Shown: positions 25,775 to 60,421 of the stretch, one piece after another
Position numbering within the stretch: the stretch's first letter is position 1
Layout of the letters: each line of letters starts with the position of its first letter
NCBI GenBank assembly: GCA_900088475.1
Contig: FLMG01003792.1
Span: 14,501-78,500, forward strand
DNA from: Hyphochytrium catenoides
Lineage: Eukaryota > Protista > Hyphochytriomycota
Direction of reading: 5' to 3'
Length of the DNA: 64,000 nt
Position numbers and translations under genes: made by a program
The notes under the pieces: model-generated
Seen by the model: only the letters and a program-made list of their open reading frames with translations
Databases searched by the model: none
What the model was told of the DNA's origin: nothing

Positions 25775-25925
25775 TTGGTGCTGGTGCTGGTGTTGGGGCT
25801 GGTGGTGGTGCTGCTGCTGCTGGTGCTGTTGTTGGGGCTGGGGCTGCTGCTGGTGGTGGTGGTGCTGCTGCTGCTGGGGGCTGCTGCTGCTGGGGGGTGC
25901 TGGTGGTGGTGGTGCTGCTGCTGCA
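25775..25925. repeat. compound trinucleotide repeat (TGC/TGG; CAG/CAC on the minus strand)
   Basis: Runs of tggtggtgg and ctgctgctg produce spurious poly-W/C, poly-L/V, poly-G/A and poly-Q/H ORFs in several frames. Confidence 0.85.
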
Positions 25926-34529: not shown

Positions 34530-37500
34530 TTACTGACGGAGTCTCGCAGAGGTGTCTCCGCCGGAGAGAAGGCGTGCCATCTGATCACGATAACTTATGT
34601 CTGCATCCCCGTTCATATAGCTTAAACCCGCAGCCTGTAGGGTCTGGCAGTAGTCGGGCTTCTCGATGACGTTGAGATCTACTAGGCTCCGGCATATGGA
34701 ACTAATCCACATTGCCTTGATCGGCGTTGGCCTGAGAAGTCTCACTTCCACCTTGATCACTGACCTTGACCTCCCATTGTCCGCTAGGTTTGGCAAGCAC
34801 AACCCTTCAACCTTATTCAACAGAACGACCACGTGCTCCTCATTGAAACCAAATATCTGAGTGAGATGCAGGAGCACAGCATCATGCAGGAAGTGGAGCT
34901 GATCCCGGCTGGTCCACCATGAGTCGGAGTTATGAGCAAAAGCGAAGGCAAACTTCGTCGCGATGAATCTGGCGGGAACACTTCTTGTCTGCATCAGGCG
35001 TTTCTGGCGGATTGTATCTCCTGGTATGCACCGCGTTGCTAGCTTACTCATGGGCTGGGACCTGTATAAATAGTCATCCGGCGATTAAAGACACTTAGAA
35101 GATAACGAAACCGACATTGGAAAGACCGAGAAAATTATGACTATGGACAGACAGAAACCTTACCGGGTATAAATGAGTCGAACCACGCTGACCACTGAGC
35201 CGGAAGCTTGGTTTCCAGAGGTTTGTTGACCAGAGTCAATTCCTGGCTGCTGCGACGTCTTCCACTTGATAGGAAGAAGTTCAGACAGTCCCGGCTTGGG
35301 GCTTGAAGTGCTGCTGCTATTCATAGTACCAAGAAGGGGTGCTCTACTAGAGATAGTAGAGGGTCGTGGCTCCCACAGGAAACTAGATAAAGAATCTTCA
35401 CTATCCATCGATAGTGACTCGAGCACAAAGTCTTCCGCTACCTTGGAAGGGGCTGGCGGTAGAGGACTATGAAGAAGGTGGACAAGAAGAGTGACAGAAC
35501 TTCCACGTGTCAGATTCAGAGGCTCCGGCGTCTGGAATACCAACTCTTGGTCTCTCATAGGCAACAGACAGGAGAGGGTGAAGTTGACCCTTGCAAGGCC
35601 TTCAACGTAGATAGTTCCTGTAGCCTTGACGCAAGCGCCTCCCTCCGGTCCCCATGCAGCTGGAATGCTGACTCCTTTGAGGGTAAGGTCACGCTGAGCA
35701 CGTAACGAATAAGCGACACGACGATAGCTCCAGCTTTGAGTCAAAGAAAACGGCGTGCGGTGGTTAAATAGAGACATGGCTGACCATAAGCCATCTACAC
35801 TTTGATGTTCCCTGTTCACAAAGCAGAGACAACGTGAGCCAGTAACACAAGGATTCCATGTCGGAGGCAATTACGCTCACCTTTCAATCATCAGACTAAG
35901 TGCAGGATAGCTGCTGACTGGCTGACCAGAATCGGGGCCAAGATTCGCGGGCAAGGAGTCAAATCTTCCTTGGACGTTTAAGAAACGGGCTCCAGAAATA
36001 ATCATCTCAGGTTGCCCTTGGGTAAGGCTGGTCGTTGCGCAAAGGACATTAGAAGTTGCTGTGATGAGCGAGTACCGTCGACCAGGAACTAGGTCCCTGG
36101 ATACTCCAGGGAAGCCACAAAGTCTTCCATCTACTTTTCTAGATGGGGACAGCTGTGAGACCCTGGCCATGGTTAGAAGTATTCCGTCCTCAAAAAGGCC
36201 AACGTTGGGCTCTACTGCGTAAGGAGGGACCCAGGGAATTGCCGAGAGTCTCGTTGGTGAAAGGTATTCTTGCTGGATGCAGATACCACTAAGCTTTGCA
36301 GGTACGAAGAGATTAAAGTCTAAGGTCACATAGCCCTCGTTGCTTGAGACAGCGCAGGATGTTCCAGCAGGCAATGGGTTTGGTAGGCCCGAGTATGCTG
36401 TTCGAGGTGCTTCACTCAACATAGGGGCCTCTGGCCTCCTACGATTTAGCAGTTAAGGTGGCCATAAGTATGATGTCTTGATCAAGTAACATGAAGTGGT
36501 AAAGAGACAGCACAAAGGGCAAAACTAACCTTGTAAGGATGGGTGTCAGTGGACTTCCAGACTCTAGGTTGAGAGATGTGCCTAAAATGTCATCCTTGAA
36601 GCTTTGGGGACCAGAGAAGGTCCCAAAGGCATTGATAAAGGTGGAGTTAACTGAAGCCACTGATGCGGTAAAGCACCTATTGGATAGAACAATATAGATT
36701 GGACCTGCTTGAAGTAAGATGGGCTCCGCGAAGTATTCGGCTGCACCCTCAAGAACCTGGCTTCTATTTGAAAGCGTTAGGCTTCCTAATGTTGGGAAGA
36801 AAGTCTTATTAAAAAATCGGAGCAGGGCCAGACTGGTTGATGTCCAGTCTTCTCCAATGCGGTAAGGAGGGGCTCCAATACCCAGACCTGTCACTAATGC
36901 TTCTTGCTTGACTGTAAATGCAGTAGCGGTCCAAGCTGCGCTGCATGTAGAAGTGTTAGTTGGCGAAGGTAGCCACGAAGAGAGGAAGCCAAAGGCCCGA
37001 GGTGTGGGCTGTGGTGGCTCTAATGCGACAATATCAAATAATGGTGCAGTGATGGGGCCGCAGGATTGAGTGGCCGAATAACCGCTGACCCCTGGTGTGT
37101 TAGAGAATGTGGACGTGTTGACGGCATCGCCTGTCTGGTTACTCTCAAAAATTCTCTGGCAGGAGAACGAAGCCCACCGCAATTTCATCTGAGAGGCGGT
37201 AGGACCTGTCGCCGTCTCCCGATTCTCTACGAGTTCGAGGTACCGCATGGGCAAGACTGCAGTTAAGGAGTAGTGACTTCCGCCATTTAGTTGTGCAGAT
37301 CCACTTAGGCCGCTAAAGCGATAAGAATTTACGCGCTGGGAATCGGATGAGACATTGCTCTGGGCTAGGACTTTGCCTGTCATGGTCTCGTAGAGTCGAA
37401 GGGCTACTGATGCATCTCCCAAGCCTTCGCACAACAGGGGGCTTGCAACATCGAGAATTCCTAACCCTGTTACCGTAATGTTTGCGACTGGGACGAAGTC

Positions 37501-40500
37501 CATGCGAATCTCAGTGCTCTCTCGCACACACCGCGCCGCCGCGACCTTTGTTGGAGGTACGATATTGCCAATGATGGACTGCATCGCACTGTCACCACCA
37601 TACGGAGCAGCAATGAATGGCGTTAGTAAGATGGCTGGAGAATCATCCAGACCTCTTCGACTTACCTCTTGGGCACGAAAGAGAATACCATGGATGGCGT
37701 GCCACCGTCATTTACGCGCTTTGTTGGATCAAGCAGCTCAGCTGTGAGGTTGAAATGTGCTCGTTCTTCTGGTGTCTGTGGCAGGTTTACATAGCTATAG
37801 GAGTTCATGGTGTAGGGAGCTGAAGGACTTGCGCTAATGCCAAACGGAAGAGAGATATTAGGTAAAATAGCCCGCAAGTGGTATTGAAGTCCTCGAGTCA
37901 ACAGCTTCCTTTCGATAGGCTCCAAGAAGACCGATCTTGCGCTGTCAGCCGTAGCTGAGTATCTGCTTACGTCCGATCGAGCCAACAGCTTCGAACCCTG
38001 GAGCAGCTCCACCCTGATGCTAGAAAGATTCGTACCTGTGGGCATCATCATAATACAGAAGGCTAAGCAACGAGGTATGGTCACCTTATTCCTTGGAGTC
38101 TACTAGTATCAAAACCTACCACTTGTATTGAAAAAATACGTGGGCACACCGAGGCCGGTTAAGGTTATGTCAGAAGTCGGGGTGAATTGCATCGCTCTCG
38201 CCACAAAAACCATAGAAGCGTTCGACATCGGCAAGCCCCATCCTTGTGTGTGAGTGGTCTCTAGGAGATACTGCACGGAAAGATTGCCAAGGGGACGCTC
38301 CCTTGGGTATCTAAGATTGAAAAAGCAAAACGAGATGAGTATGGGCCCACGACTCATCGCCATCACGTTTCTTTCTCCATACCGGGTATAGATCGCCGAC
38401 ACAGGCGAGCAAGCTTGATAAGGCAATGCATTGTCCCACGATTGAGTCCAGAAGTCCCGTGGAAGACTGGTTGCCATTGAAGAAACGGCCATTCCGTACT
38501 CACGCTCATTGTTTGGTTCGATGGCTAATGGATGGAATTCTCCTAACACCGGGTCATACCTGTCTGAGCCCGCACAACTCAGTAGCACGGGCTCGTGCAT
38601 AAGAGCAGCCATGAAGTACATTTGTCCACGTCTCAGTAGAAGAGGCGACTCAAAGGAGGTTACCAGTCGGTTTCGAGTGACGTCTGACCAGTCCCCTAGG
38701 TAGACCGAAGCCAGCCGGGATCCGCTGATATAGGGTGCTGAGACCGAATAGGCCTCATAGATTCCAACGTGGTACGTCGGAGTTTGTGCCTCCATAGTAA
38801 ACGGTAGAGCCACGGCTGCACCAGTGAGTAGAACATCCTGTAGCGGCGTGAACTGGTACCCTACAATCAGGCTCCTCTCTTCATGTAACTTAGGACCACT
38901 GAATGGTACTATTGATGCAGGAGCAAGATACCCTTTAGGTTGATAATCGGGGCCGATGGCCTTGGATTTCCTGATGGTGATAGATGCGGAATGAAGTAGG
39001 AATCAGACATAAGTTATGGCGAGAAAAAATAAAAGTCGAGCTTATTATCTCTCAATAAGGTACGTACCGTGCAAACAAGAAGGTCAGTGGGACTTTGGGT
39101 GACTCAAGCACACTGCCAAGAGTAGTGGTGTTGTTATCTACACTTGAAGTCAACATTGTCACCATAGTATGTGTATAGTGTGTCACGGTGAGCTCGAAGG
39201 GCAGCACACCAGAAAGAGTGTAACGCAACCCAGGTTTAAGAGAGATTGACTGCCCCAAAGCACCATAGGCCATGTAGGAATTGGCTCCTTCATAGTCGAA
39301 TGAGAGTGAATCTGACATAGAAGGCGGAGGCTCTATCGACAACGAGAAGGAGGTCAGTAACTTCCCGGATCCTTGCTCGCTCAACTGGAGGGCGACGTTC
39401 GTCATGGCGGATTGAGTTAAGTTAGACCAACACCCTCCCGAGGGACTTGGAAGCACCGACCCAAAACTGGTGACCATTAGCTCTTGCTGCACAGTGAAGG
39501 TGAACGAATAGCTGGTCTGACGCTGATTACATAGGTGCACACTGGCAAATTTGAGGGCCGCCTCGCCAACCGGACCAGGTGCATGTCTGATAGGAGCGGA
39601 AAGGGAATCACTTCACGAGGAGACTCGATCCTGCACCGTGACATCTTAGCTTACCTTCGGAATTTTATAGTTAGGACTGGCACCTCTACTTCATCCCGCA
39701 AACCCGGACCGGGGCAGAAGCCACTCCTAGCTGTCCTATTACCAGCATACTGCAGGACGAGTTGTGGATCTAAACTAGCGGGAAGAGAGCTTGTGCCCTG
39801 ATAATATGCTATCGTGAATGCCGTGGTTTGACCACGGAATTGGGGTGACCTCTCGACATGGCGAGGCCCAGAACGGAGATATTTTCCCGGAACAGTAGCG
39901 GCCAGATAGTACGTCGTACCAGCGTGAAGAGTAAAGGTTCCTGGAAGATGGTAGTACGCATAGTCGTCGCCTTCGTGAAGAAAGGCAGCGAGTACGGACA
40001 GTCTGAAGCGGGTAGACCCTCGAAGTACCAAATTCTCATCGTAGATCCCCAGCTCCAGCCTTCCCATGTCTACGCTCGGGCTCCCCAGTTGGTGGAAGGC
40101 GTCCTCAAGAGCTTCACGCAGCAGGCCTACAGCTAACATGGATGTTGATATCTCTGGTTTGACCTGAAGCAGGGCAAGAGTATGGACTGTCTGGAGATCC
40201 TTTCGCACGACGGGGAAGAAGCCCTTTTGATCAAGGAAAAGAGGTGTTCCGACCCCCGAATAGAAAGAGTTGGACCTAGGAGAAAAGCCAGAGAAACGTA
40301 AGGGTTATTGTAAGGGTCGGCAGCGCAACTCGTCATGCCTGCTTCTAACCTGGTATACATGAAGCCAGCGCCATTCCAGAGGCCAGATATGGCCCAGGGT
40401 GCATTTCTCACAGCCGAGGTACAATTGAAGGATGTCCGCATGTCACATACAACGTCAAAGCGTATGGACTCCTCGGAGAACATTGACCATACTTGCGTTT

Positions 40501-43500
40501 GTGACATCTGTATAGTCAAAGACAGAGATGTCCGCAGAGCATACCTGCGCCCTCGGCGCAGTCGCACCGGTGGCCTCACTGACATATACCTAAAACCTCT
40601 AATCAGTTTTCCTCTTCTTGAACTAAATAACCCCTCAGCGACCACTTGATTTTGGTCATCCACCATCACTACAGCTTGAGTATCTCTAGTGTGGTTGGTA
40701 CATCCTAGGCAATTCTCCTGATTTAGATCTACCAGGCCCAGCGACGTTATAAGGATGTCTTCGTAAGGGTAAAAGTCAGTCGACATCAGCGGTCCAGCTA
40801 AGCTGTCCACCCTAATTACACTTGTATTCTGCATTGCTACTGCTTCAGTATCAAAGTCTTCATCTCTGTCGGAGGAAGACCTGACCAAGGAAAGAGCCAG
40901 TCAGAAGAATTAACGCCAAGCAACACAATTGAGCACTAGGTATCGTTTCAGACTTACCCGCCTCCGAAGGAGAGTTGTGGCACATAAGGCAGCAAGCACT
41001 GCGCGTTCCAGGTCAAAGAGGAGGTGACTGAACAAGAGGGGACAGAACATGTCCTCGACTCTCGGCGGAAGGCACTAATATTCATGCCGCGCACTCCCTC
41101 AGCTCTAACCGCGGCGTCCACCAGTTCCCAGTGTAGAGGTTTTGGGAGACCGCCTAGTTCTAGACCGCTACACCCTTCAAGGACTGAGGGGTAGCAACCA
41201 GATAGACCAAGTCGGTAATCGATCACCTTCACGTAATTGTTGCAGCCACTTGCCACATTCTGTGTAGCCAAGGTCATTGGAAGCTCAGCGGTCAGAGTAT
41301 ACGTGTATCCGGATTCCAAAAACAAGCTCCTGTTCAGGCTGAGATAATGACTGTAGGGGAACAGTGTGACGTTGACTAAGAGAGAGGGCGGTGATCCGCT
41401 CTTATAGATTGAGATTGGAATGGCAGCGGAAATGAAGTCCTGCTGCAACTTCATCGTCCTGTCTGGAGTAGGGAGAGTGTAGGAGTTGATGAACCCTTCC
41501 CGCTTAAAGTACAATCCCTGCACCTCTATTGTTCCCTTTGGTACGATAAAATCATAGCCCACTTTGCTGGTATCTACGGAAAGCAGAACCACAGACGCTG
41601 ACGCTGGAGGTGGAGCTGTTGGAGGTGGAGCCGTTGGAGGTGGGGCCCCACTGGGTGGTGGAGAAGGTTTTGACTGGGTATCATTACTGGGTGCCTCGCT
41701 GCCATAATGATTTCATAGAGGTTTTGGGCTTTATTAGCTCCTTGGCATGGGGAAATTAAAAGAAAAGCCTTTCACAAACCTGGTAGGAAGATACGTGAAT
41801 GTCATCAAAGCAGCAGGGTCCAAGGTCCAGGTCGAGTTCTCCCTTGTGTACCACATCGCGGTGCTGGAGTAAGGGTCATTCGCATACAGCCAGTGGCTAA
41901 TCCGGTGGCCGATCGTGATGTTCGGGTTGACCAGGAAAGACGCAGCCTGACGACTAGAGACATTGAAGACTGGGAGATTAGCAATTAGGAGGTATGAAGT
42001 ATTTGCCAGCAGTTGCGGCGCGGGGGGATAGTAAGCCGGTCCGCTAAAGCCACTAGTCCCGGGATAAGTGTTGAACGAGTTGTAGGCGTTTGTCTCAGCC
42101 CTTCGAAATCTGCCTCCAGCCGCCTCTACTATCGGATCAACTACCTCAACCACAGCGCGCGCAACTTCATAACCATATAAAGCATTATAGATGGCAATAG
42201 TCACGGGCCCATCCCAGCCTGAGGTTAATCCGGACGAACAATTATTCCATTGTGGCTCAACCACACCCAGCCCAGTGAGGGTCATATTCAAGCTTGGCCT
42301 GAACTCGTATCCCAACAAGACTCTACCCGGCTCTAGAGGTGCTCCGCTGATGGGTTTATTTCCTATGCTGGAGCTGGAAGGGCAAGAGTCCAGTAGCAAT
42401 TGGCCCATACGTCCAGCTGGAGTTCCCGATGGTTCTCCTGAGGGCCTGCAGAAGGGCAAGGGGACTTTACTTTGAACTACAGATCTTTGATGTATCGTAT
42501 TGAAAGATGACAGGTTTACCTCACGATAACCATGCTAACCGCAGAGAGATTTTCTCTAGCTAGCAATAGTTCGGCATCCCCTTTTATTGGCCACCAAGAG
42601 GGAATTTCAGCACTGTCAAGGCTTGAAGTCGTGTTAACTCTCGGCAGGGAGAAGAGAGTAGCATTGCCGACCCCCACAAGACTTGCTAAGGTTGACGTAT
42701 TTATCTCTCCTGCCGGTCCCAAGACCCCTCCATTGGAGATGTTTGCGAAAGTTGTTTGCCTGCGTCTCACAAAGGGAAGCAGAGCTAGAACGCCATAACG
42801 GCCTCCCGCTGGGAGAACCATCCCTGAGGGGAGGCCTCCCACATGCTGCATTTCCATGATCGCTGACCATCCACCTACCACGATGGATGCGAGAAGAGTC
42901 ATGTTGCCACTATCCGTAAGGTTATAGACTCCAATTTTCCCATAGAGCTCACGAGCATTTGCTAAATAGGTTCCATTTCCAACGCAAATGTCACCTGAAG
43001 CTCTGTATAGTCCGAAACCCTTAAGGAAAACAGTGCTTTCGGTTGAAAAAGTGAAGCCAGAATAGACACCGGAGTGGACCTTGATGTGGCAGATATCAGG
43101 ATTCCATCCAGTAGGGTTAGAAAGTGGGAATACGCTGCCGCTGCTCACCATTTTCGTGGTCGGTACCCTACAATAAGCCACAAGATTTGCGAAGTTAGTA
43201 GGACTTACAGCGGATGCAGACGAGGACGGAAAGGGCGCTAAGCTAAGCTCGGTACCTGTAGTAGAGGAAGTCTAGGAGACCCTTTATAGATTCATTTCTG
43301 CAAAATGATGCGAGACACGGCTGAAGGTTGAGGTTATACAATGTGTAGGGTAGACCATAATTGGCAGGTCCAGAGGACCCTAAGTCCTCGTAGCTATTTC
43401 GTGATGGGAAAGAGAAGAAAGACGACTCAATCTGTATAACGTCATCAGGACTCATCGTTGATGGAGGTTGCCCATTGCCATTTGATCTTGATGTGTTCAC

Positions 43501-46500
43501 GAAGTACGGAAGTCTGCCTACAATTGTATACCGCTCCCCTTTTCGCAGAATCATAGAGTTCTCAAATCTTAGGGAAGAGTAAATCGTCCCGCCCAACTCC
43601 TGCAGTCTGCGGCCGCTCCCCGGCCCCACGCGAGCGGAGTTTAGAAGATAGCCACGAGCATCGTAAATGCCCAATATACTTGACCATCGGGCACTGTAGA
43701 CCAGCTCTTCCGATTCCGTAGCGTCATACAGTCCCCTATCATTACCATTTATCACGTTGGTGATATTCTCTTCGTCACAAACCCCAGTCCATGCTACGGG
43801 GCTAGCAACGCCCATTGCGGCAATGTAAATATCAGCACGAACTGTGAAGGAGAAACCCGTTTCGACTGACTCCGCAACTCCACAGGAATCAAACGTTGGC
43901 AAAGGCTGGAATGGTTTGGCAAATGAGTACTCATAGCCCCTGTTGAAGGTGCGAATGAGAGGCAGGAGAGCGTTACGTTGATAGTTCAGTCGGGGATTGA
44001 TAAAAACAAGGCCACCGCTTTACACCTAGACCTATGCGTGATTGGATACACTTACCTCGCATATAAAATGTCAACGATTGGTAGCCAGGAGCCTTCCGAG
44101 TGCCAATAGTCAGATCCCGTTCCTGAAACTATCTGAGTAGCCGGCACTGGTGGGAGAGTCCAGGGGAGATCGTCCCCAGGAAGAAATCCCGTGGCTGGAG
44201 TGCGGAACTTGGAGAGTACGGTTAATCTCTCGTTCCAATTGGAACTTGCACTTCCTACAATTTCATAAGAGACCAGGGCAGTGACCGCATATCTTCTTCC
44301 CGGGTAGAGCGTAGTGGGTCCTTGGTCAAGGATACTGTAAGCAGCTCCCTCTGACATGTACTCCGGTCTAGCTGATGAAGCTGATCTATGAAAAATTTTG
44401 GTGGAACCAAGAAGGAGCCCTGAAGTCATATCATAAATGCCGACGGGTACCGCACTCTCCAACGGTAAAGCTCTCTCGCTACCATATACTGTTACTGGAC
44501 TCAGGACTCCTACAGCCGTAATCACCGTGGGCACGCGGACCGCTACTTCAAGGCCAACGAAGGAGCTGATAATAGGGTCTACTGTTCCATATACTGGGCT
44601 GCCTGAATAGTAGCTGATCAACGACTCACCCTCAACCGAACCAGTTGCTGGCCTGTATATAATACGAAGCGGTAGAAATGAGGAAAAAACTATGGGCGTC
44701 AGAGCGTGACAGAGATGCTGTGTCACTCCAATACTGGTACTTACCGCGTGTACAGGAAAGAGCTTGGGATGCTGATGCCTGCACTACCAAGTCCTTCTGA
44801 ACTGTTTCCACTTAAGAATTCACCCTGCCCTTCAGTGTTATTCCCAACATTTACCGATCTCGTAGCCCAGCCGTGAAGAAGGCGGCCTAATCTGAACCCC
44901 GCTCCCAAGAACGCAGGTGCCATTCTTATAGGAGCCGCAGAAAATGTGTCATACGGAGCCTCCACAACGATGGCATATTCAGTGTCTGGCCTCATTTGTA
45001 CCGGCGGCAGTACAGCCTCGTATAGGTAGCTGTCCTGATAGTGACTACCTGCTGTCACGGAGACAGAATGGACCATGATATTCCGCTGAACCTCCCATAC
45101 CGAGACTACAACTTGAGGGCTTAGCGAGTGTGGTGGAAAGAAATATTCTGAGGCTCCAAGAGCAGTCAGAAGAATACTTCTAGTTGGCCAGAACGTGATT
45201 CCGCTCGTATTCAACAAGGGTAAGTTCGAAGGTTCTTGACCAGCAATTATCACTGCATTTTCCCCCGCCACTGCAGTGCGCAACCTACGCGGAGGACGTC
45301 GGCAAACTAAGAAAGCACCAACGCACAATCAACTGTTGTTGTGTTTCACACGTACCTGTCAACAAACAACCTCGGCCTGTGGGAATAGTAAAGAGCACTT
45401 TCCGATCCGTCGATAGTAGTGTTAACGGTGTCATGAAGAGGTGGCTGACATGTTCCATTGACGCTCATGTCCATGCAAACGCCAGTTAGGCTCATGTTGA
45501 TGTGCGCCACCAGACGGGTCCACCACCACTCCAGATTGCCTTCGCCGCTCAACGGCTGGTAATACTCGGACTTAGCCAATGGCCAGGGCAAGGCTTCGCC
45601 AGAAATGTTCGGCGATGTGGTAGCGAGACCACCCAAATCCACACCAAACCTGTATCCGGACACTATGACGCTCTCTAGATTGGGGTTGGACGTACTTTCA
45701 GCCGTTAGGAGGACCATGGGCAACCGGACAAGCACACTATAACTCTTCCCTGGCGTAAGCACAATCGGAGGCTCTACTCTTGCGTGAGACTTGTAAGGCG
45801 CCAAAGTGATATTTGCAAGTGATGCTCCCGTCATCGTCTCGTAAAGCCAGAGAGTCAGAGGGCTGGACTGGAAGGTAGACTGCAGTAATGAAAGGTCAAC
45901 AGAAGTGTTTGAGTCTGGACTTGCACCATAATGAGAGATCACGTGACTGATTGTCCTGTTGAATTCAAGACCAAAGAGCTTCCAAGGACCGGATCCCCAT
46001 ACGGTGAAGTCGTAACCAGCAACATTTGGAACCGACGCAGCATAGAAAACTGGCTGTTGGATGACGGGTCTGGGTAGATCAGGAAAAGGTGTTGGTATGC
46101 CGCCTGTCGTCCCATTTGTACTTGATTGGTTGTCAACCTGCTGCCATTGGCTGTGAAGTAGATTATTAGAGCATTCACGCAGTATATTGCTTCTAAAAAC
46201 TACTAAAACGTTACCTTGGTAGCGGTGGAAGGTACGAGAAGCTTAGCAGCCGAGCGGGATCCAAACAGAAGTCATTCACGCTGTAGCTGGCGTTGACGTC
46301 CTGCGGATGCCAGACATAGCGGGACGCGTAGAAGGAGTCATAGCCTACGCTAAAGGGCCCACTCGATAACCGAGACCCGACGGTGATATTACTTCCAACA
46401 AATAGGTTGGAGGACTCATATGCGCAGCTACCGGGATAGAAGGCAGTCGCTGGGACGTTTGCCACTAAAGAGTAAATTCTGTTTGGCTGCAGGACCACTC

Positions 46501-49500: not shown

Positions 49501-52500
49501 CTCGAAAGGCCCTATCTCGTTGGCCTCGTCCACAAGGCTGTATTTGAAGTAATCCTCCCATACTCCCAGTGCTGTGAGGAGTGTGGCGTGCTTAGGACGG
49601 AAAGAAAAGCCGGTAATGAGACCTCCCTTCCACGTCCCATTGATCGCTAGTGATTGATTTCGTAAGTCCTCGTCCATACTAACGGCGCTGTGGCCGCTTA
49701 CAGACGGGCGCAATCTGTCAAAAGAAGAGAGTTAGAACGAGCCAAAGATCAGGTAAGCTGCAAGACAACAGACCACCCACGATGCTCACCTGGCTGTCCA
49801 GATCGCTGGCAGATGTGGGTATAGGACACGGCTCCCTACACCTAAACCGCCATCCCATTGAGGGATGATACTTCCATTGCCAGAGTTCAGCGAAGAGTTG
49901 ACACCCGCAGATGAACTATTCAGACTTTCGCCTCCAAGTACTTCCGACCAGACGAAAGTCGCATCGGCCACATTTCCATATAGCGGAAGCCTGTGGGTGT
50001 GTTGGAATTGAACTACAGAGCTTCCATTAGCTAGGTGTTCGATGGTGGATTCCGGCGCGAGGCGATACGCTGAAACTGCGATATTGGGCTCAAGAAAGTC
50101 CCAGGGTTTTGCGGTGGTGAGCAACAGAGCAGGCACAGCCACTAATACAGAGTATGTCCTGCCAGGTAGTAGGACTACCGGAGTATCAAACAGTACGCGG
50201 TCACTGTACGGCAACAATGTATCAGTTGTCAAGAGGACGGATGAGCCACTGGTCGTGTCGTAAATCCAGAGGGGAATTTCAGCGGAGGCCAACAGAGCCT
50301 GCACTTGAGGCATAGTGGGTACTGGACCATCGGCAACGACAACATCCACCGCTTGACGCTTGAAGTCAAAGCCTGAGATTGACCAGGGCCTATCGTCCAT
50401 GATACTGAAATCGAATCCAGCCACCATCGGGGGTGATGGCAAGTAGAAGGGCCCGTATTGAGGAGTCGACGCATTACCGTCCGGTAGGGGAGGTGGCACT
50501 GTAGGAGTTGGCCTGCAGGGAGCACAGTTAACAACAAGGAAATAAAGAACCATTGTCCCTGGAATAGAGCAAGCTTTAAGAAGAGGAAGGAAGACCTACC
50601 CACTAGGTTGTAGCTTCTGATACGTGAAGGCGACAAGACCGAGACTGTCCACTGGAGGAAGGCTATTCGAATAGTAGTCGCCTGTAACTAGCCAAATACT
50701 ATCTGGACTCGCATAGTATGGTCCACCTTGTTTACGCTCCCCGAAGCTGATATCCTGTTGTTGAACGCTGTATGTGGTCCTCATTGGAGTTGTCGTGGGT
50801 GGAACTGGCAAGTTGACTACCAAGGTGTAACTCTCCTGACCGCTCAGGCGAAGTCCACGAATCTGGGTGGGCAGGCTACCGTCATAGGACAGTTGTACGA
50901 CAGGGAGGTAATCAAGCACTGTAACCCGCATGCCAAGAGCGGGGAAGAAGGGATTGCTTGGTTCCACTCGAGCACGGAGTACTTCCACGCCTGTATGATC
51001 GTTATAGATAGCGACCGTGATAGCATGTCCCCAACCATATCTCTGGGTATCGATGTGCTGCGAGCTGAAGTTTAAAAGAGACGAACAATTCCACAATGGC
51101 TCAGCAATGCCAATGCTTGTGACGACGATATCGGTCAATGGTTTGAAGTTGTAGCCCAGCAGCAAACGGTCTGTTGCGGTCTCGGTCCTGGGGCAACCAT
51201 CAACGACGAGCTCATGAATCTGGACAGAGCGGTCTCCTGAAGGTGGGATTGGGCGTCTAGGAAAAAAAATAAAGACGGGCAGCAATTCAGCAAAACGAAG
51301 GTTGGACAAGCTTCACAACGCCCATGCCCTACCTGTTAAACATTGCAAAGGCGGATGGCAATAGGGATTCGATAGGGTACGATGCTGCAAGAGTCTCATT
51401 GGCGCTGTACGCCCATAATCTCTGGGACTCGAGCTCTGTAGGAAGTAACCCTCCACTTGCCATAACTTTATTCGTGTCATGGGCGTCGTAAAAGGAGGTA
51501 GAATAGCCCACTCCATTCCACCATGGACTTTTCCCTGGGCTCTGGACCCAAGGTAGCGCATAGTCACCCACCACACGTACAAAAGGCAGTGAACCAGCGA
51601 TGGCATACAGCTTCCCAGCTTGTAGATGCACCTTAGTTGAGAGTACTTCCAATTGTTGTTGCATGCCGATTGTCGGTGACCATGGCCCAATAGTCAGCGA
51701 GCCCAAGAGCGATAATTTGCTAGAGTTAGGGGAGGATGCATTCAGGCCGTAAACGCCAACCTGAGATGAACCCATGCCCATGTTTAGGTGGAACGTCCCA
51801 TTCAGTCGACAGAGGGGCTCATCATGCGATGGCATGATGACTCCAAGAGTTGAGATCTCAACGTCCTCAATAGGGACAAATGTGAAGCCTGACAGGAAGC
51901 CATATGGTACCGGAAGTGCGCAGATGCCTCCAGCACCTGTGTGGGGCGGGAAGATTGCGGTATCGCCAACGGGGAAAGGTTGGAACGGATGCTCAACCCT
52001 ATGACAGAATGTCGTTACTTCTTGCTGTTATTATGTTCTTCAGGCTCACCAAGAGACAACATTTTAGAGCACGAAGACAGAGTAAAGAAAACGCTAGGGT
52101 TCGGTCATACCTTGTCAGAGCCAAGTCCAGAAGTCCATCCATCCCCTCTGCAGAAGCCACACATGAGGAAGAAGCAACATCGCAACCTTCTCCCAGCCCG
52201 ATGGCCGCAAGGTTGTTGAAGAGGCGGAAAGGCGGAATATTGTTCCCTGTAGAATAGGGCACAGGTTTTGGTAGATACCTTCTCTTAACCTCCACAAAGT
52301 TGGCTGGACCAACACCAAGGCTCGTCGCATTGCCAAATGCTTGAAAATGAACAGGAAGGAGTCCAACGACGGTGTATGTACTGTCTGCTCTTAGTAACTG
52401 AGCCGAGGAGTTGTGGAAACTGCCATATAAGGTGCTGCCTCGCTTGGTACTTCCAGGTCCGATGATGGTCGATAGAATAAGCTCCCCCTGCCAGTCATAA

Positions 52501-55500
52501 ACTCCAATAACGCTAGACCATCTGGTTCTGTCCCGAAGTTCTTCCATAGTATCAGGGTCTGAGGTACAGTTCGTCCCATTGTTATTGTTCAAGAGATCGC
52601 TGTTCCATGACTTTGGAAGTGCGAAACCAACAGCGGACAGGTAAACATCCGAAAGAGGGACAAAGCTGAAGGCCACTACTGCTTCCTGAGGGATTGCACA
52701 AGCCTCAGTGAGCTCTAATCCATACAACGGCTGGCCCACCAGAAGTCCATCTCCGTAGGGCACCCTAAGGGATGGGATTATTTAGTACACTATTAATAGA
52801 ACTGTTTTTACTAGAATAACCGTTTGCAACGACTTACTCTGTGTATAGCAGATCAACCATGGGTAGTGAGGCGGAATATGAGTATTGCCCCATCGTACCG
52901 AAGCTCCCGCCGTCTGCTACAGAAAACAACGGTGCGATGCTGGGTAGAGGATCACCTGGACTGGAGCCCCCCATGGGCGGGCCCTGTAACCACGAGTAAA
53001 TATCCAGCAGCTCTGTGGTCTGACGTTGAGGCAATGAGAAAGTCCCGCCAATTCTGTAAGACACCCGGGCCACAATTCCGTAACGCCTCCCAGGGTAGAT
53101 AAGAATCGGTTCTTGCTCTAATGGGCTATACAGAACTGATGGAGAAGTATGGTCTACCCTCACTGAAGCTGTGGATCGATGGAATACGGTGGTTGAACCA
53201 AGCAAAACCGATCCCGCAGTAAGGTCATAGATCCCCACAGGGACTGCGGTCTCTAGTGGTGTCAAGCCCCACTCGAAGAAATAAGGACTTAGAACCCCAA
53301 GAGCTGTCACTTTAGTCACGACCTTGGGAAGGACCTGAAGTCCTACGAGGGAGCTGCCAGCAGGGTCAAGATAGCTTAGGCCTCCAGAATACACCCCATA
53401 GCGCACCGGAGAATTGCCTTCAACGGTTCCTGGCGCGGGCCTTGAAAAAATAGAATATTGTCAACGAGAGCATTCGAGTTAGCAGACTAATGTAAAGGCG
53501 ACTGGAACCGGCGGCAATCACGCACCTGGTAAAGAGGAAGGACACTGTCGGTGACGGAAGTTCGTTAGCTTGAATGTGGCTGTTATAAACGGTGTCCTGC
53601 GTACTGTTAATGCCGTAGCCGTCGGCAAACTCAATGAAATCTCTCAAAGCAAAATGTGAGGAGAGCCTGGCCGAGAAAGCACCATCTGCCACTCTACGAG
53701 GCATTCCGGGAAGTATTCTCATGACGATGCTGAACTCAATATCTGGCTCCAGCTCCAATGCGGGAAATAGAGCAGCGTAGTGGTAGCCATCTCTGACCTC
53801 GTTGACCAGACTTACCGATGTCGAGGTCAAGAGAATTTGGGACTGGTAATCGATGAGGTTCACCTGTACCTGAGCAGGAGTAGCTCCGACCATGCATAGA
53901 GGGCAGTCTAGCTGAGAAGTTAGTAGCTCACTCCAGACCCCAAGGGCAGTTATCAGAGCTCTTCGCCTGGTGATGAACCTGAAGCCGACTTGTTGGCTTT
54001 CGGTCCAGGTGCCATTGAGCCAGGATAGTGTAGAAGCGGCTTCTTCAGGTGCAAGCACTCCTGGCTTCCCGGCAACGGATGGCCTTAAACTGTTTCAAGT
54101 AGTGGTCAACAACAAACGATAAAACGTCCATACGCATGGAAGGAAACAGAAAACTTACGCGCTGACTTGCAAAGTGGGCATATGAAATAGAGTAAAACCT
54201 TCCTCTAATGCAGCACTCTTAGTGATGGCTGGTGACAACTGCTCCCCATTCTGCGATGCGCCGCTATCGGAGCCAGTTGGCATAGTTCCATTAGCAGCAT
54301 CTGACAGGAGGGGCCACCATGGTGGAGCTATATTAGGATATCCATAGTGCTCCGCCAGCGGAAACCACTCTGCTGTGATGTTAGACCATCCACCTGTCAA
54401 AGGATCAAACGTGGCATTACTCCGAGCGCCTAAACCTAAGCGGTAGGCGGAAACGTCCACCCCATGGCCGCCGGGATACTGACTGATTTTGCGATTGGTC
54501 AATAGAATCATGGGTAGTGAGGCTAGAAGCGTGTATGTCTTGCCAGCAGCTAATACTACCGCCCTTTCGAACCGGAGGCCATCTTGATGATCGGGTAGGA
54601 TCTGATGGGCAAGAAGCTGGTTGGAGGCAGTGTCATACAGCCAGATGTTAAGACTAGCATTGCGTAAAACGTCTCGGGAGCTGATCCCTCCCCCTCCTCC
54701 TACACTACTATTGCTGCTGTTGACGTCCCACTCCATTATGCTGCGATTGAAATGCAGACCCCAACAGGATAAGGGGATTGTTCCGGTCACGGTGAAGTCA
54801 TATCCGACTAAGTTGGGCGCTGATGTAAGGTAATAGGGGCCGGTCCACGCATTTTGTGGCGGAGGTGTTGGAACTGGAGCTTCCGTGGGGGGATAAGTGC
54901 TGTGATACGTGAGGAGAATTTAGCCATAATTAGTATTGTTGTTGTTCAAATTCCGTCGATGATGAGAGACTTTGAAGGGCCACTTTCTTTGCTGGAGTTA
55001 GATGGACCAATGGGGCTGACAGGAGAAGAGACCTACCTATAACCTTCCAGCAACGGCACGATAAGACTATATGCCGTCCCGTACAGTGCGCTGTTACCTA
55101 AAACTGTCGTGCCCATGTTCAAAGCAGGCTCTGAATGGTTCCAATAGGCCGGCAAGTCTCCTTCGTCAAGGTGAAGGACATTTCGAGCGTCGTTGGCCCC
55201 AAACCTGTACGCTGTGACCACAATATTATCCTTGAACGGGACACTAACGTCTACCTCAGTTAGCACTGTGAAGGGAAGGGAAACAAGGATTGTATATAAC
55301 ACTCCACCCTGCAGAGTAAAGCTGACCGCATTGCGGGTTGAATATGGTGGTACCGAGCCATAGTAAACAGGATGAAAGTAGCCTGATGCCCTTGAGTAGA
55401 CTGCAATGTATGGATATTGCCCGGCAGTCATTATCTTCTCGGTCAAAGTGGTGGTCTGTCCAGTTGTCAAGTCTCGCAGCAAGGCACCTTGGTTATAGAG

Positions 55501-58500
55501 AAGCCCATCCACCTTGAAGTCACTCGTGCTTGTGACATAAAAATCGTATCCGAGCAGCGATGGTTGCGAGAGCTCGAAGTATGCACCTGGCACACCGGGA
55601 CCTGACGGGAATAGCCTGATAAAGGGGAGAATGTTCAGATAGGGCTGGACAACCAGGAAAAAGCAACAAGAGCCTTACCGGTCAAATGCTACTGCCACTG
55701 AGCTTAGCAGCTGGTGAGAGTTATCCGGAATAGGTTGGCTTTCGGTGCTTTGCAGATTTGATGCCAGTCTTTCGCTATTTATTTCGAGTGGAAGAGCCAT
55801 TGGCAATTCAAGAGCTTCCAACATGGTACGGTAAACGTTGAAAGACCGAGCATATCCGACTCCGTTCCACCAGATATCCTCTGAGAAGCCTTCGATGACC
55901 CTAGCGAAAGGTAAATTTCCAATTACGGCGTAGTCACCACCGGCCCGTAGGTGAACTTTCGATGCCAGTCCTTCTAACTGCTGCCCACCATAGAGAGGAG
56001 ACCAGCTGCCAACTGTGACGGTGGCTATTAGGGTAAAGACTCTTGCTGGTGAGGTTGCGTTCGAGGTGACATTGTAAAGGCCAACTTGCGAAATAGTGTT
56101 CGCCATGTTAGGGTAGTATACCCAGTTGAACCTACAAATATCCTCCTTGAAGGATGGTACGGTGATCCCCAGTGCTGACACCTCGATATCCTCAGTAGGG
56201 GAGAACCAAAATCCAGAATAGACACCAAATTCTGCCTTCAAAGAGCAGGATGGTAGTGCCGCCGGCAAAGGCGGCGGCAACAGCAGCTGCAAAGCGGGCG
56301 ACAAAGGGCTGGAAATAGGCGGTGAGATCCTAGGATGGTGCCACGGATGGTTAATAAAGGTGAAGAGGAACAAGAAAGGAATCAGTATTGACACCAGATA
56401 CTTAGAAGAGAGCTCGATCATCGTTAAGCGACAAACCGTTTGGGATAATCGTCTGTTATAGAATGGTGACAAAGTTGCCTTACCTGACATATAAGACATC
56501 TAATAATTCCTCAATAGCAAAGTCTGGTTCGCAGTCTGAAAAAGGCCCTATCGCGCAGCCATCACCAAGCGGCAAAGCTGAGAGTGATTGAGGAAGCGAC
56601 GAATAACCCCTTGTTTGTGCCTCTGCCTCCGAGTCGAAGGTAATGTATCGCCTGGTCATATGCACCAGAGGGCTGGTGTCTGAGCTTGAGTTACTCGCGT
56701 TTCTAGTGTTGTTGAGGAAGAATGGCAGGGAGCCAACAAGAGTGTACAGTTTTCCTGGTCGTAGGACTAGACCTGAAGAATTGTGCATGGCGCTGTAGAC
56801 CACATCCTGCTTTGTCTGATTGTTGATAGCAGAAGAAGAACTAAATCCTCTGGGGCTTGCGGGCCCGACTTGTGTCCAATCTATCAGCTGGCCTAGGTCG
56901 TCGTAAAGTCCTACTGTGGCAGCCCATCGGGCGCTGAACCGCATGGACTCGACATCATCTTCCTCCAACGAGCATGAGCTATCATTGCCTTCCGCAGGAG
57001 AGTGGCTACTTGCCATCCAATCGGGAAGTACAAAGCCAACAGCGGAGATGTACATATCAACTTGCGCCACAAAGCTGAAAGCCGCTAGCGTTCCTTTGGC
57101 AAGCCCACATGATTGGGCAGACGAGTTCCGGCTCCCGAATAACGGTTGGCCAAAGATAGCGTTGGCCTCGTCTGGCCTGGGGTAAGCATGGAGTTAGTCA
57201 GGTGTTAGAGCAAGCTCACAAACCCGCGCACCTAGTGTAAAGGAAGTCGACCATGGGCAAGGACTCTGAATAGGTGTACTCAAATCCGGCTCCTGTCGTG
57301 TCGAAGTTCTGACCGACCGGATACAGACTGGCAAATGGAGGAAGGGTATCTCCATTGCTTTGCGTCCCTGGGAGGCTTATACTTCCTTTGAGACGAGAGA
57401 AGACAACAATTGGACCCTTCTGATGAATCGCGGTGGTCCCAGGTATGCTGTACGACATAAAAGCCACAATGCCATAGTACCGCCCAGGAAACAGAGTTAT
57501 GGGTCCATTCTCTAGGGCATCATAGACAACCCCTGGCGAGGTGACACCTGAACTAAAGGAGGCTGCCGAAGGATGAAAGACCTTGGCAGACGCAAGCAAG
57601 ATGCCACCAGCGCTAAGGTCATAGATGCCAACGGGAATGGCAGACTCAGGAGGCGACAGTTCGCTGCCCCACAGGTTCCACGGGCTGAGAAAACCCACAG
57701 CTGATATCATGGTCTGAATTCTTGGGGTGATCTGCCAGCCCATGAGGGAGCTTCCTTCTGGATTGATGGACAGCGTGTTGCCGCCAAAGGAAGGAGTGTA
57801 AAGCAGGGGTGACTCTCCTTGTAGCCCACCGGTGGGTCGTCTATCACAAAGTATTCCGACCAGTGGCAAATACATATGAGATATGAATAACATCAGGTGG
57901 ATTGCGGTTAGCACTTGCTACAAGTGGCTTTTCTTAAGTAGTACCTTACCGTGTGTAGAGGAAGGAAACTGCAGGATAGACTTCGTTCCCTTCGAAATTA
58001 GGGTCGACCTTGGGCTCAGTTTCCCATAGGGCTGAGAGGTTATGACTGAGTGATGACCCCTCAAGGCATTGGCCCATGATGAACTGCCTGCCAAGAAGGT
58101 CGGAGGTAGTGGTGGAGCTATTCAGCATAAACCTTGGCATTCCAGCAGCGCTGGTCAACACAATGCCGTACTCCGTACTGGCCTTGAGCTCCACGGGAGG
58201 GAAAACGGCAGCGTAGTAATAGCTAGCTATGATGTCATCCCCAAAACTCACGTCGGCAGCTGCAAGGATAAGGTTTGACTCGCGACTTATCAGCTCTACT
58301 CTGACGCCTGGAGGACCGACAGTGTCGTTGCCTTCAGTGGGCGCGAAGGGTGGTAGCTGATCCCAAGACAAGAGCTGATTCCAGACTCCCAAAGCAGTCA
58401 ACAATGCCCCTCTCTTTGTCCAGAAACTGAACCCAACACGAGTGCCAGTGGTCCATGTTCCGTTGACAAATGGGGGAGAGACTGCACTGGTAGGGTTGTC

Positions 58501-60421
58501 GTCTCCTAGCGATGCCACCAAGCCGGGGGTACCAGCTACCTTTGGCCTCGGCCTTGCAGAATTTGTTTAACCGAGTAGCAGGAGTCCGTGGGTAAGGATT
58601 GCACACGAGGACCATGTCAGCGATTCGAATGGTTGTCTTACCTTGCCATTAGAAGGTTCGGAACGTGAAACAGCGTCATTCCCTCAGCCAATGCAGCCTC
58701 CTTGTTTAGAACAGAAGCCATCTCACCTGCTCCGGTATAGCTGCTATCAGTCTCGTGTTGATGGTCGACATTGTCCGGCAAGTAGGCCCACCAAGGTGGC
58801 GTCTCTCCAGGGTAGCTCTGGGTGGTGGCAATGGGAAAAGAGTAGACAGGCCAAAATGACCACTGCTCCCCGGTGGCAGGACCGTACGACGCATTACTGA
58901 CGGACGGTTGCAGACCGAAGCGGTATGCAATAATGTCCAGGTTATTACTTCCTGTGCCGTATTCAACTACTTGGCGATCTGTTAGGAGAATCATTGGAAG
59001 GGACGCCACAACGGAGTATGCCTTTCCGGCTCCAAGGTTCACGGGCTTGGTAAATCTAACTCTTTCTTGAAAGGCCTCTAACACCTGATGGGCTAGGACC
59101 TGGCCCGTGCCTGTGTCATATACCCAAACGTTCAAAATGGTGTTACGCAAAGTGTCCCTTATAGATTGTATATTTGTCTGGATGTCGCCTTCCATCGGTG
59201 ACCATTCGGCAATACTTCGGTTGAAGTAGAGACCCCAGCACCTCATGGGGATGGACCCAGTAACAGTGAAGTCATAGCCAACGAGATTAGCCTCAGGACT
59301 CAGGTAGAAGGGTCCTCTCCATGACGCAGGACTTTCTGTCACTGGCAACCCACTTATCCTGCGGCACAAGGAGAAGGCAGGAACAAGGAGGTAATCAGCT
59401 CAAGTATGAAGTAGGTGCTGCAATGCAATCTGGTGATCTTCCGAGTGAGTCTCACCTTAAACTCTGGAATGCCGGGATGAGAAGTCCAGCCTCCGATCCA
59501 CAATTGCAGCTAGTCACGATGGCATTGGAAGCAATCACTGACGGAGGATCAACATCATTCCAATACCCAGGAAGAAAGCTCTCTTCAACATTACTGAAAT
59601 CGTCCAGAAACCTTGGGTCGTTTTCTCCGAGCCTGTAAGCTGAGATGCCGATGTCGCTCGCCGATATGTTAGGCTCCAGATTGGGCTTTGTAAGAATTGT
59701 GAAAGGCAGTCTCAACAGCAAGGTGTAGTTGTTATAAGGATACAAGCTAACAGCATCAAGAGAAGAGAGCTCTTGGTAGGGCGAGAAGACACGTCTTGCA
59801 ATCTCCTGGAGGTTGGGCGCACGCACGTAAAGTGCGAATTCAATGTACTGCCCCATGGACTCAAGCTTGGCACCCAAAGACCTCACTTCGCCATTGGTCA
59901 CATCTTTCACAGCCACTCCTTGGTTGTAGATCAATCCCTGTAATTGAACTTCACTAGCAGTGTCTTGCACATAGAAGTCCAAACCAACGATTGAGGGATT
60001 GTAGTCAACGATGAAGGCGTCCGCGACGCTGCACAAAAGGATGCAAACAGGTGTATGAGCGCGGCAAGCGACGACATATCATATGTGAAAGGAGAGAGAA
60101 AGAACGAACCTGTCGGCGGGTGAAGGTGGCTCAGTGGTGGACTGTGAGAGCACGACCTGGGATAACAATTAAATTAGCTCTCAGTAATAGAAAGTTAGCC
60201 AACAAAAGGAAACTAACCGTTCCATGCTCAATGCTGAGAAGGTGGGCAAAGCACAGTGCCCAAAGCCAGGTAGTGGCTCGAAGTTTGGTCCTATAGAGAG
60301 TGGTGGCAACAAGATAAGTAACGACCACAGCAACATAGTTGGTCTCCCTTCTTGTACAATAACAGAAGTTGCTGTTGAAAGACTTTGGGTATTAATCTCA
60401 CCTTCTGCTCAATGGCTCCAT
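34530..60421 (-). CDS. giant secreted multi-domain protein (about 7,500 aa, about 39 exons, about 35 tandem DUF4082-like beta domains)
   Basis: Hand-spliced GT-AG model. Exons (high-low): 60421-60402, 60290-60218, 60156-60110, 60028-59456, 59358-58642, 58552-57950, 57840-57232, 57176-56484, 56329-55679, 55615-55037, 54899-54159, 54089-53526, 53440-52838, 52764-52111, 51998-51333, 51256-50600, 50512-49790, 49714-49184, 49101-48505, 48403-47693, 47608-46976, 46895-46215, 46150-45356, 45284-44745, 44652-44056, 43939-43256, 43167-42520, 42445-41780, 41698-40958, 40880-40350, 40275-39655, 39586-39068, 38970-38383, 38310-38120, 38035-37666, 37588-36530, 36438-35881, 35811-35164, 35061-34530 (or a further short exon ending at TAG 34431). 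The frame is preserved at every junction. N-terminus MEPLSRRTKLRATTWLWALCFAHLLSIEHGTVVLSQ. Repeated core G(F/Y)xF..vtalG..v(G/w)iYD...g.lLa...L.pG..Y.v. Confidence 0.88.
42520..46895 (-). repeat. super-repeat unit 4 of the giant gene (G,B,C,D,E,F)
   Basis: G (GIAEPLWTC..GWG), B (AGYDFTV..FNRT), C (LLTALG), D (PLESAVPVGIYD), E (ARWSSILGIYD), F (DICHI..YSGFTFST). Confidence 0.85.
46976..51256 (-). repeat. super-repeat unit 3 of the giant gene (G,B,C,D,E,F)
   Basis: The first exon is type G (C..R.LLGY.F..GIAEPLWNC..GWG); the other five match B-F. Confidence 0.85.
51333..55615 (-). repeat. super-repeat unit 2 of the giant gene (A,B,C,D,E,F)
   Basis: The same six domain types in the same order as unit 1. 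Confidence 0.85.
55679..60028 (-). repeat. super-repeat unit 1 of the giant gene (domain-exons A,B,C,D,E,F)
   Basis: Type motifs: A GL(I/L)YNQG; B GPFYL..GYDFTV..GL.FNR; C NGTW..GF.F..ALLTALGVW; D ESA(I/V)PVGIYDL..VFH; E FSFV..RW...G.YD; F SGF.F..CR.N..VGLYN..G.WS. Confidence 0.85.

Follow-up and report, generated by a model that had tools for sequence, protein, structure and literature searches.

In this work, a 64,000-nt stretch of the genome of the protist Hyphochytrium catenoides (Hyphochytriomycota; assembly GCA_900088475.1, contig FLMG01003792.1, positions 14,501 to 78,500 of the forward strand) was analyzed. In the following, the whole stretch is called the window, and all positions are counted from its first nucleotide. 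The minus strand from 60336 to 34530 appears to carry one giant eukaryotic gene, and its product is reasonably probable to be a secreted glycoprotein of 35 tandem domains that grew by exon duplication and has a role as an extracellular fibre or coat component. The domains are very probably remote homologues of DUF4082, a domain of bacterial surface proteins.

A probable single gene of 37 exons

The giant gene was modelled with 37 exons and 36 GT-AG introns. Its coding sequence (CDS) of 22,620 nt encodes 7,539 aa, and the frame runs from the ATG at 60336 to a stop codon at 34530-34532 without any internal stop. The exons are listed with their higher coordinate first.

Exon 1, 60336-60218, minus strand, Met and hydrophobic signal-like peptide MLLWSLLILLPPLSIG...
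Exon 2, 60028-59456, minus strand
Exon 3, 59358-58642, minus strand
Exon 4, 58552-57950, minus strand
Exon 5, 57840-57232, minus strand
Exon 6, 57176-56484, minus strand
Exon 7, 56329-55679, minus strand
Exon 8, 55615-55037, minus strand
Exon 9, 54899-54159, minus strand
Exon 10, 54089-53526, minus strand
Exon 11, 53440-52838, minus strand
Exon 12, 52764-52111, minus strand
Exon 13, 51998-51333, minus strand
Exon 14, 51256-50600, minus strand
Exon 15, 50512-49790, minus strand
Exon 16, 49714-49184, minus strand
Exon 17, 49101-48505, minus strand
Exon 18, 48403-47693, minus strand
Exon 19, 47608-46976, minus strand
Exon 20, 46895-46215, minus strand
Exon 21, 46150-45356, minus strand
Exon 22, 45284-44745, minus strand
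Exon 23, 44652-44056, minus strand
Exon 24, 43939-43256, minus strand
Exon 25, 43167-42520, minus strand
Exon 26, 42445-41780, minus strand
Exon 27, 41698-40958, minus strand, opens with a (PPPTA)n Pro-rich linker
Exon 28, 40880-40350, minus strand
Exon 29, 40275-39655, minus strand
Exon 30, 39586-39068, minus strand
Exon 31, 38970-38383, minus strand
Exon 32, 38310-38120, minus strand, part of a split domain (with exon 33)
Exon 33, 38062-37666, minus strand, part of a split domain (with exon 32)
Exon 34, 37588-36530, minus strand, 1,059 nt, two domains without an intron
Exon 35, 36438-35881, minus strand
Exon 36, 35811-35164, minus strand
Exon 37, 35061-34530, minus strand, 176-aa non-repeat C-terminal region and stop codon

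From 60408 to 34533, the minus strand is tiled with stop-to-stop open stretches of about 180-420 codons each. Only a minority of these exon-sized open reading frames (ORFs) start with an ATG, and, therefore, they are not separate stand-alone eukaryotic genes. The open stretches terminate a few codons past a good GT donor, and the read-through typically ends with "...LYTR", which corresponds to AG|GT. For each gap, all frame-keeping GT...AG pairs of 40-400 nt were listed, and the candidates were ranked by a combined score of donor, acceptor, and length; a few introns were set by eye. The resulting introns are 55-189 nt long (median about 80), the first one being the longest (189 nt). Phase 2 was found for 35 of the 36 introns, and the sole phase-1 intron lies between exons 32 and 33. 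The lengths of exons 2-31 are all divisible by three, yielding 30 symmetric exons. The donor consensus is (A/C)AG|GTAAG, with G at -1 in 34 and at +5 in 31 of the 36 introns, the acceptors are of the pyrimidine-rich YAG type, and the GC content is 0.516 in exons versus 0.442 in introns. Intron retention would stop or shift the frame in 35 of 36 cases; the intron at 38311-38382 (72 nt, set by eye) is devoid of an in-frame stop. At some introns, e.g. after exons 3, 6, 20, and 26, alternative acceptors are present a few codons away.

Chance cannot keep a frame of 7,539 codons open. As an alternative, the locus might be a tandem array of shorter genes from one family, or a single gene with many exon-skipping isoforms, and, indeed, any subset of the symmetric exons 2-31 would keep the frame, and the predicted 23-kb mRNA would be unusually long. 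RNA runs that could speak to this did not turn up. However, not a single internal exon has its own ATG with a signal-like start, no exon has an in-frame stop ahead of its donor, and every gap contains a short GT-AG intron of the same phase, while there is only one signal-like peptide and only one non-repeat C-terminus. We consider the tandem gene or isoform explanation unlikely, and the model of 37 exons in one gene very likely. A bacterial contaminant is ruled out by the 36 spliceosomal-type introns and by the eukaryotic neighbouring genes.

The initial annotation had already proposed a single giant gene, and the continuity of the frame, the uniform phase-2 GT-AG introns, and the lack of stops and indels bear this out. 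Its stop position at 34530, its protein length of about 7,500 aa, and its estimate of about 35 domains agree with the recomputed values (34530-34532, 7,539 aa, and 35 domains). About 35 exons, 22,614 coding nucleotides, and introns of 55-154 nt were close, but had to be corrected to 37 exons, 22,620 nt, and 55-189 nt. The proposed start codon at 60421 was rejected: this ATG is not in the frame of the signal-like peptide, its ORF closes after 7 codons, and joining it to the gene would take an intron of about 30 nt, whereas the Met of the signal-like peptide is at 60336. The respective 7-codon ORF (60402-60421, minus strand, MEPLSRR-stop) ends upstream of the predicted start, its ATG being 85 nt before it, and might be an upstream ORF if it is located in the 5' untranslated region.

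The domain array and its growth

Thirty-two exon-domains were aligned (alignment A1), and a hidden Markov model (HMM) was built from A1. On the spliced protein, this HMM detected 35 tandem domains between residues 21 and 7369. The three domains outside of A1 were encoded by exons 32 and 33 together (independent E-value 1.8e-9) and by the two halves of exon 34 (1.5e-12 and 9e-5). Thus, 32 domains have an exon to themselves, another one is interrupted by the phase-1 intron between exons 32 and 33, and the remaining two share exon 34.

An all-against-all BLAST and a tree revealed seven domain types, A to G, with support values of 95-100 (Shimodaira-Hasegawa-like approximate likelihood ratio test) for the clades B, C, D, E, and F. 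The domain order is (ABCDEF)(ABCDEF)(GBCDEF)(GBCDEF)(GBC), followed by eight divergent domains, and the super-repeat has a period of 4.36-4.45 kb.

Block 1, 55679..60028, minus strand, exons 2-7, types A B C D E F
Block 2, 51333..55615, minus strand, exons 8-13, types A B C D E F; 31-47% identity to block 1 by type
Block 3, 46976..51256, minus strand, exons 14-19, types G B C D E F
Block 4, 42520..46895, minus strand, exons 20-25, types G B C D E F
Partial block 5, 40350..42445, minus strand, exons 26-28, types G B C
Divergent tail of 8 further domains, 35164..40275, minus strand, exons 29-36

Block 1 is nearest to block 2, and block 3 is nearest to block 4. The paralogous domains share 28-48% protein identity, and the reading frame is open in all of them. 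At the DNA level, the sole tandem repeat in the gene is a 15-nt Pro-linker repeat in exon 27 (41605-41647).

Because all types have their intron at the equivalent domain boundary, the unit of exon plus intron predates the whole amplification, and, therefore, the array grew in a eukaryotic genome. The growth would have proceeded by tandem duplication of such units, and, as the exons are symmetric (phase 2-2), any unit can be duplicated with the frame intact. In the proposed scheme, the seven domain types A-G would have arisen first, and a six-domain block of about 4.4 kb would later have been duplicated to about 4.5 copies.

The domains as probable remote homologues of DUF4082

A profile search with A1 against 1.84 billion representative proteins yielded 662 proteins at E <= 1e-3 and 32 at E <= 1e-10, with a best value of 1.9e-40. 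Twenty of the matches were scanned, and DUF4082 (PF13313) was found in 17 of them, in 11 cases above the gathering score of 28.4 bits. PEP-CTERM was present in three of the scanned matches, and some had PKD, dockerin, or chitobiase-C modules. The named matches were bacterial (an Arenicella metagenome-assembled genome (MAG), Sorangium, Armatimonadota, and Planctomycetota). An alignment of A1 with ten DUF4082 segments (alignment A3) using hhalign resulted in a probability of 98.5% and an E-value of 1.5e-15 over 98 columns, a result that is not fully independent, because the A3 segments were picked among A1's own matches. Common to A1 and A3 is the motif G-x-x-F / vTALG / VGIYD / LLAs / L-x-G-x-x-Y.

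The fold was predicted with AlphaFold (AF2) for the domain of exon 11, using the A1 alignment. The model is all-beta, with a mean predicted local distance difference test (pLDDT) value of 82.3 and a predicted template modelling score of 0.83. A fold search against the AFDB clusters returned a DUF4082 protein as the top match (E 3.8e-6); among the best 30 matches, 7 were named DUF4082. In the ESM-Atlas shape search, all ten rows were DUF4082 or PEP-CTERM clusters, with template modelling scores of 0.61-0.66 and root-mean-square deviations of about 3 A. The language-model feature search of the Atlas also placed a DUF4082 cluster first (score 0.95, 188 features in common). Among solved structures, the best matches were the PHR domains 3no8 (Z 10.0), 3gbw (Z 9.7), and 3hwj (Z 9.0), with about 135 aligned residues, and further matches were a cyanophage capsid protein, the lectin-like domain of Cwp84 (Z 8.9), and esterase domains that resemble carbohydrate-binding modules (CBMs; Z 5-6). 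At the sequence level, neither the PHR model (PF08005) matched any of the 32 domains at E <= 10, nor did the A1 profile match any PDB sequence. A Pfam scan of ten raw pieces gave no match at E <= 0.1.

The resemblance to DUF4082, proposed in the initial annotation from the motif pattern, is thus reproduced by the profile search, by hhalign, and by the fold search with a single domain, in which DUF4082 models came out on top in both AFDB and the Atlas. It holds at the level of profiles, but a scan of single domains fails. As single domains stay below the Pfam threshold, the window domains represent a divergent branch, and the wording "DUF4082-like" is appropriate. We conclude that the homology is highly probable, and that the repeats are a divergent, longer branch (about 200 aa) of the DUF4082 / PHR / lectin-like beta-sandwich group. 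The domains of type C were nearest to bacterial sequences in BLAST and in the tree. In a quick tree, the window domains did not form one clade and type C grouped with bacterial sequences; because the support was weak (80), we draw no conclusions about the number of origins or about horizontal transfer.

Relatives in bacteria and in environmental sequences

Two environmental fragments were found that belong to specific domain types. P0024 (246 aa, from a 1.2-kb Logan contig of run ERR12035942) is 41-45% identical to type B over the whole domain and is located within the B clade with a support of 97. Beyond the end of the homologous exon, its sequence goes on as "...LTLTR-Y...", and this would allow for an AG|GTA donor at the equivalent site. 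P0061 (116 aa, soil run SRR5690349) falls within the E clade with a support of 95. Judged by their sequences, both fragments suggest that homologous multi-type genes exist in other soil eukaryotes. Apart from them, the profile, Atlas, and BLAST searches retrieved no named eukaryotic relative and only unnamed diatom and haptophyte clusters, which were seen in the Atlas searches and are weak leads. The earlier statement that the protein does not belong to a described eukaryotic family is therefore uncontradicted. No relative came up when the A1 alignment and exon 11 were used as queries in word-based homology searches, their length filter leaving out long proteins, and two tblastn scans of JGI metagenomes with type-D and type-B alignments gave no match, intron-rich eukaryotic genes being reached poorly by both approaches. 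A somewhat unlikely extension is that the window encodes the founding full-length member of a family of giant, lectin-like surface fibres in eukaryotes, in which a domain typical of bacterial exoproteins would have been amplified to seven specialised types and 35 copies via phase-2 exon duplication, with relatives in other uncultured soil eukaryotes.

The genes of the two closest bacterial relatives, P0001 and P0004, adjoin genes for two GH38 alpha-mannosidases, LacI, and a sugar ABC transporter, which is a hint that the bacterial DUF4082 proteins deal with glycans. Both are multi-DUF4082 proteins from the same ENA sample (loci L001, 6001-8934, and L002, 6001-10672), and in L002 a second DUF4082 gene directly follows the first.

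Predicted secretion and glycosylation, and a possible role

The signal-like peptide of exon 1 is hydrophobic and was judged by eye. N-x-S/T sequons occur 116 times, compared with about 52 expected from the composition. An even number of Cys is encoded by 30 of the 37 exons; the number is always four in type E, always two in type F, and almost always zero in type D. The linkers between the domains are Pro-rich. Elsewhere in the 7,539-aa protein, the hydrophobicity is nowhere sufficient for a membrane span, and a tail typical of a glycosylphosphatidylinositol (GPI) anchor is missing. The signal-like N-terminus, the twofold sequon excess, the even Cys numbers, and the lack of a transmembrane segment lend indirect support to the extracellular glycoprotein that had been postulated at the outset. 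Secretion of the giant protein is likely, and it is predicted to be N-glycosylated.

A different location has to be considered, since the best solved-structure matches (Z 9-10) are PHR domains of intracellular proteins: the protein could be a giant cytoplasmic or cytoskeletal scaffold with PHR-like protein binding, as in MYCBP2 and the BTBD proteins. The short, visually assigned signal peptide and the lack of both a transmembrane segment and a GPI-like tail would be in line with this. However, PHR is not matched in Pfam, whereas homology links the domains to secreted or surface DUF4082 proteins with PEP-CTERM, dockerin, PKD, and chitobiase-type modules, and the sequon excess, the even Cys counts, and the Pro-rich linkers fit the secretory pathway. 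An intracellular scaffold is, thus, improbable.

The C-terminal region encoded by exon 37 (176 aa) contains four Cys, no sequon, and no hydrophobic tail. In the Atlas, a SEA cluster was found at rank 7 (score 0.77), and the AF2 prediction from the single sequence (pLDDT 45.6) had a beta-alpha-beta-beta-alpha order that is merely suggestive of SEA. A SEA-like alpha/beta fold is, at this level of modelling, a weak lead.

According to the proposed reading, the protein would start with a short signal peptide, continue with 35 beta-sandwich domains (about 200 aa each) and Pro-rich linkers, and end with the unrelated 176-aa C-terminal region. It would be secreted, heavily N-glycosylated, and not membrane-bound, and would form a long extracellular fibre or a component of a coat; as a rough estimate, such a fibre might have a length on the order of 100-plus nm. 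The domains would act as spacers and, at the same time, bind glycans or surfaces in a multivalent, lectin-like manner, and the C-terminal region might be used for attachment or assembly. A glycan-related role fits because the closest bacterial relatives adjoin mannosidase and sugar-transport genes. The bacterial relatives are exoproteins, and lectin-like as well as carbohydrate-binding modules belong to the fold group. Nevertheless, binding of glycans or surfaces by the domains is a tentative proposal.

Constraint on the sequence

DNA contigs from two or three runs with the same organism label (X1-X3), which cover 34400-37700, were compared with the window. In 2.8 kb of CDS there were 27 substitutions, 11 synonymous and 16 non-synonymous, corresponding to a ratio of non-synonymous to synonymous polymorphism (pN/pS) of about 0.48 (one-sided binomial p 0.049 for the synonymous excess). 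The 469 bp of non-coding sequence contained 10 substitutions, i.e. 2.1% versus 0.95% in the coding sequence. The CDS had no indel, and the sole indel was downstream of the stop codon. These results reveal a mild but consistent purifying selection on the giant gene. The stronger argument for constraint is the age of the repeats, as the domains are only 28-48% identical and yet all open. At 36252-36366 and 37404-37540, the X1 and X2 Logan contigs separate into two similarly deep alleles (3-4 differences each), which suggests that the sequenced organism was heterozygous (diploid or mixed culture).

A decaying or non-expressed relic with a frame that is not yet broken might be suspected from the modest pN/pS with 16 of 27 differences non-synonymous, from the missing RNA runs, and from the fact that a close relative was absent from the protein and metagenome searches made, but it is very improbable, because 7,539 codons are free of stops, the divergence of the duplicated domains to 28-48% identity indicates long frame-preserving selection, the CDS has zero indels versus one just past the stop and half the non-coding density of single-nucleotide differences, the Cys counts are kept within the domain types, and the environmental P0024 and P0061 retain type-specific sequence.

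Several results weigh against the secreted 35-domain glycoprotein and should be viewed together. RNA runs were sought and none was listed, and a second search returned only DNA runs and a soil metagenome with 5% of the words; since RNA runs were not found, we infer the junctions and the single transcript from the genomic sequence. The splice statistics are partly circular, because keeping the frame and the consensus score were the selection criteria. In the Pfam scan of the 32 domains, DUF4082 was detected in just one, with an E-value of 0.13 and below the gathering score. The top solved folds, the PHR domains, belong to intracellular proteins, and the signal-like peptide is short, was judged by eye, and has no charged n-region. 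The 176-aa C-terminal region has no family match in Pfam, and the Atlas and the single-sequence AF2 prediction gave only the weak SEA lead. In the searched literature, where two papers mention DUF4082, both in passing, no ligand or binding site was found for any DUF4082 domain. Lastly, a pN/pS of 0.48 from 27 sites (p 0.049) indicates only mild constraint. With these points taken into account, one eukaryotic gene for a secreted glycoprotein with a fibre or coat role is still the probable explanation as a whole.

Other features of the window

Two further putative surface or secreted genes are located on the plus strand close to the 3'-end of the giant gene, forming a run of three with it. The ORF at 32838-34058 codes for an Ala/Pro/Thr-rich secreted protein that weakly matches the Reeler domain (E 2e-4) and ends in a hydrophobic tail; the ORF enters an assembly gap (Ns, read as X) that lies about 500 bp downstream of the stop of the giant gene. 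The intronless ORF at 29279-30121 encodes a Cys-rich and Ser/Pro-rich protein with a signal peptide and a GPI-anchor-like hydrophobic C-terminus, and has no Pfam match. The features in the remainder of the window are as follows.

2970-3036, minus strand, borderline Rfam match to the C/D-box small nucleolar RNA SNORD36 (33.6 bits, gathering score 30, E 0.15)
4155-5420, minus strand, intronless gene for a 421-aa AGC-family kinase, best matches animal ribosomal S6 kinases (42-47% identity)
8161-9012, plus strand, secreted protein with a PAN/apple domain (PF14295, E 3.8e-8)
25542-26060, plus strand, ORF consisting mainly of a Cys/Trp/Gly low-complexity run from a TGC/TGG-type simple repeat, probably non-coding
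63430-63992, minus strand, two adjoining ORFs, one with the motif CHPEVAGVGIEYCWG, resembling remains of mobile-element proteins, no Pfam match

As the AGC kinase is at most 47% identical to its matches, the genome is without a close sequenced relative in the protein collection.

Comparison with known systems

The closest known systems are the bacterial DUF4082 proteins. Their beta-sandwich domain is homologous and has the motif G-x-x-F ... vTALG ... VGIYD ... LLAs ... L-x-aG-x-x-Y, as observed here, and they are secreted or surface proteins in which the domain is sometimes arranged in tandem. Up to eight matched stretches occur in the bacterial proteins, in contrast to 35 copies in the window. 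Examples are PEP-CTERM exoproteins, a 5,332-aa protein of the Arenicella MAG (P0003/P0151), and Sorangium DNRLRE proteins. In contrast to these, the H. catenoides gene is eukaryotic and intron-rich, and its product lacks PEP-CTERM, dockerin, or any other partner domain. The domains are also longer than the Pfam model (about 200 aa versus 143) and have their own C-terminal extension that ends in a conserved strand, v-d-f-L-Y-T. DUF4082 is widespread in bacterial surface proteins, but its function is a blank in the searched literature. A eukaryotic array of 35 copies with conserved types is a tractable system for the expression of single domains and for binding tests, and, if a family of surface fibres exists, it would offer the first experimental handle on the binding targets of DUF4082.

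PHR domains (PF08005) are known from MYCBP2/Highwire/RPM-1 and from BTBD1/2, with the structures 3gbw, 3hwj, and 3no8 (reviewed in PMC4806438). They have the same beta-sandwich fold as the domains described here, and some DUF4082 clusters also carry PHR matches. However, the PHR proteins act in intracellular signalling and have one or two PHR domains, whereas the window encodes an array without a PHR sequence match. The same kind of beta-sandwich is found in the lectin-like domain of Cwp84 (PF18560, 4ci7) of Clostridioides difficile and in the CBM-like N-domains of acetylxylan and sialate esterases (7tog and 7tok), all of them surface or carbohydrate-active proteins. The bacterial matches P0001, P0006, and P0007 contain both DUF4082 and Lectin_like. 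The likeness to Cwp84 and the esterases is indirect and at the level of the fold.

Giant proteins with one domain per exon or with long repeat arrays include titin and animal matrix proteins, and the bacterial adhesins SiiE, LapA, and MpIBP. Titin-like giants have tandem beta-sandwich domains and grew via the duplication of symmetric exons and of multi-domain super-repeats, and the modules of animal extracellular proteins typically have phase 1-1 introns. The giant gene of H. catenoides is similar in scale and in its proposed mode of growth, but has a different domain family, phase 2-2 introns, and a protist host. It is a very regular non-animal example of giant proteins being assembled via symmetric exons and the duplication of blocks, and, if our reading is true, it would be a clean non-animal case of exon-shuffling-style growth to a titin-sized protein. 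It is also a warning that ORF-based or bacterial-style gene calling splits one such protein into dozens of orphan fragments. In summary, giant secreted proteins with tandem domains, growth by exon duplication, and the DUF4082 family, catalogued without a known function, are not new. New are the eukaryotic host, the 35 copies compared with at most 8 in any match, the strict phase-2 layout with one exon for one domain, and the super-repeat of seven types.

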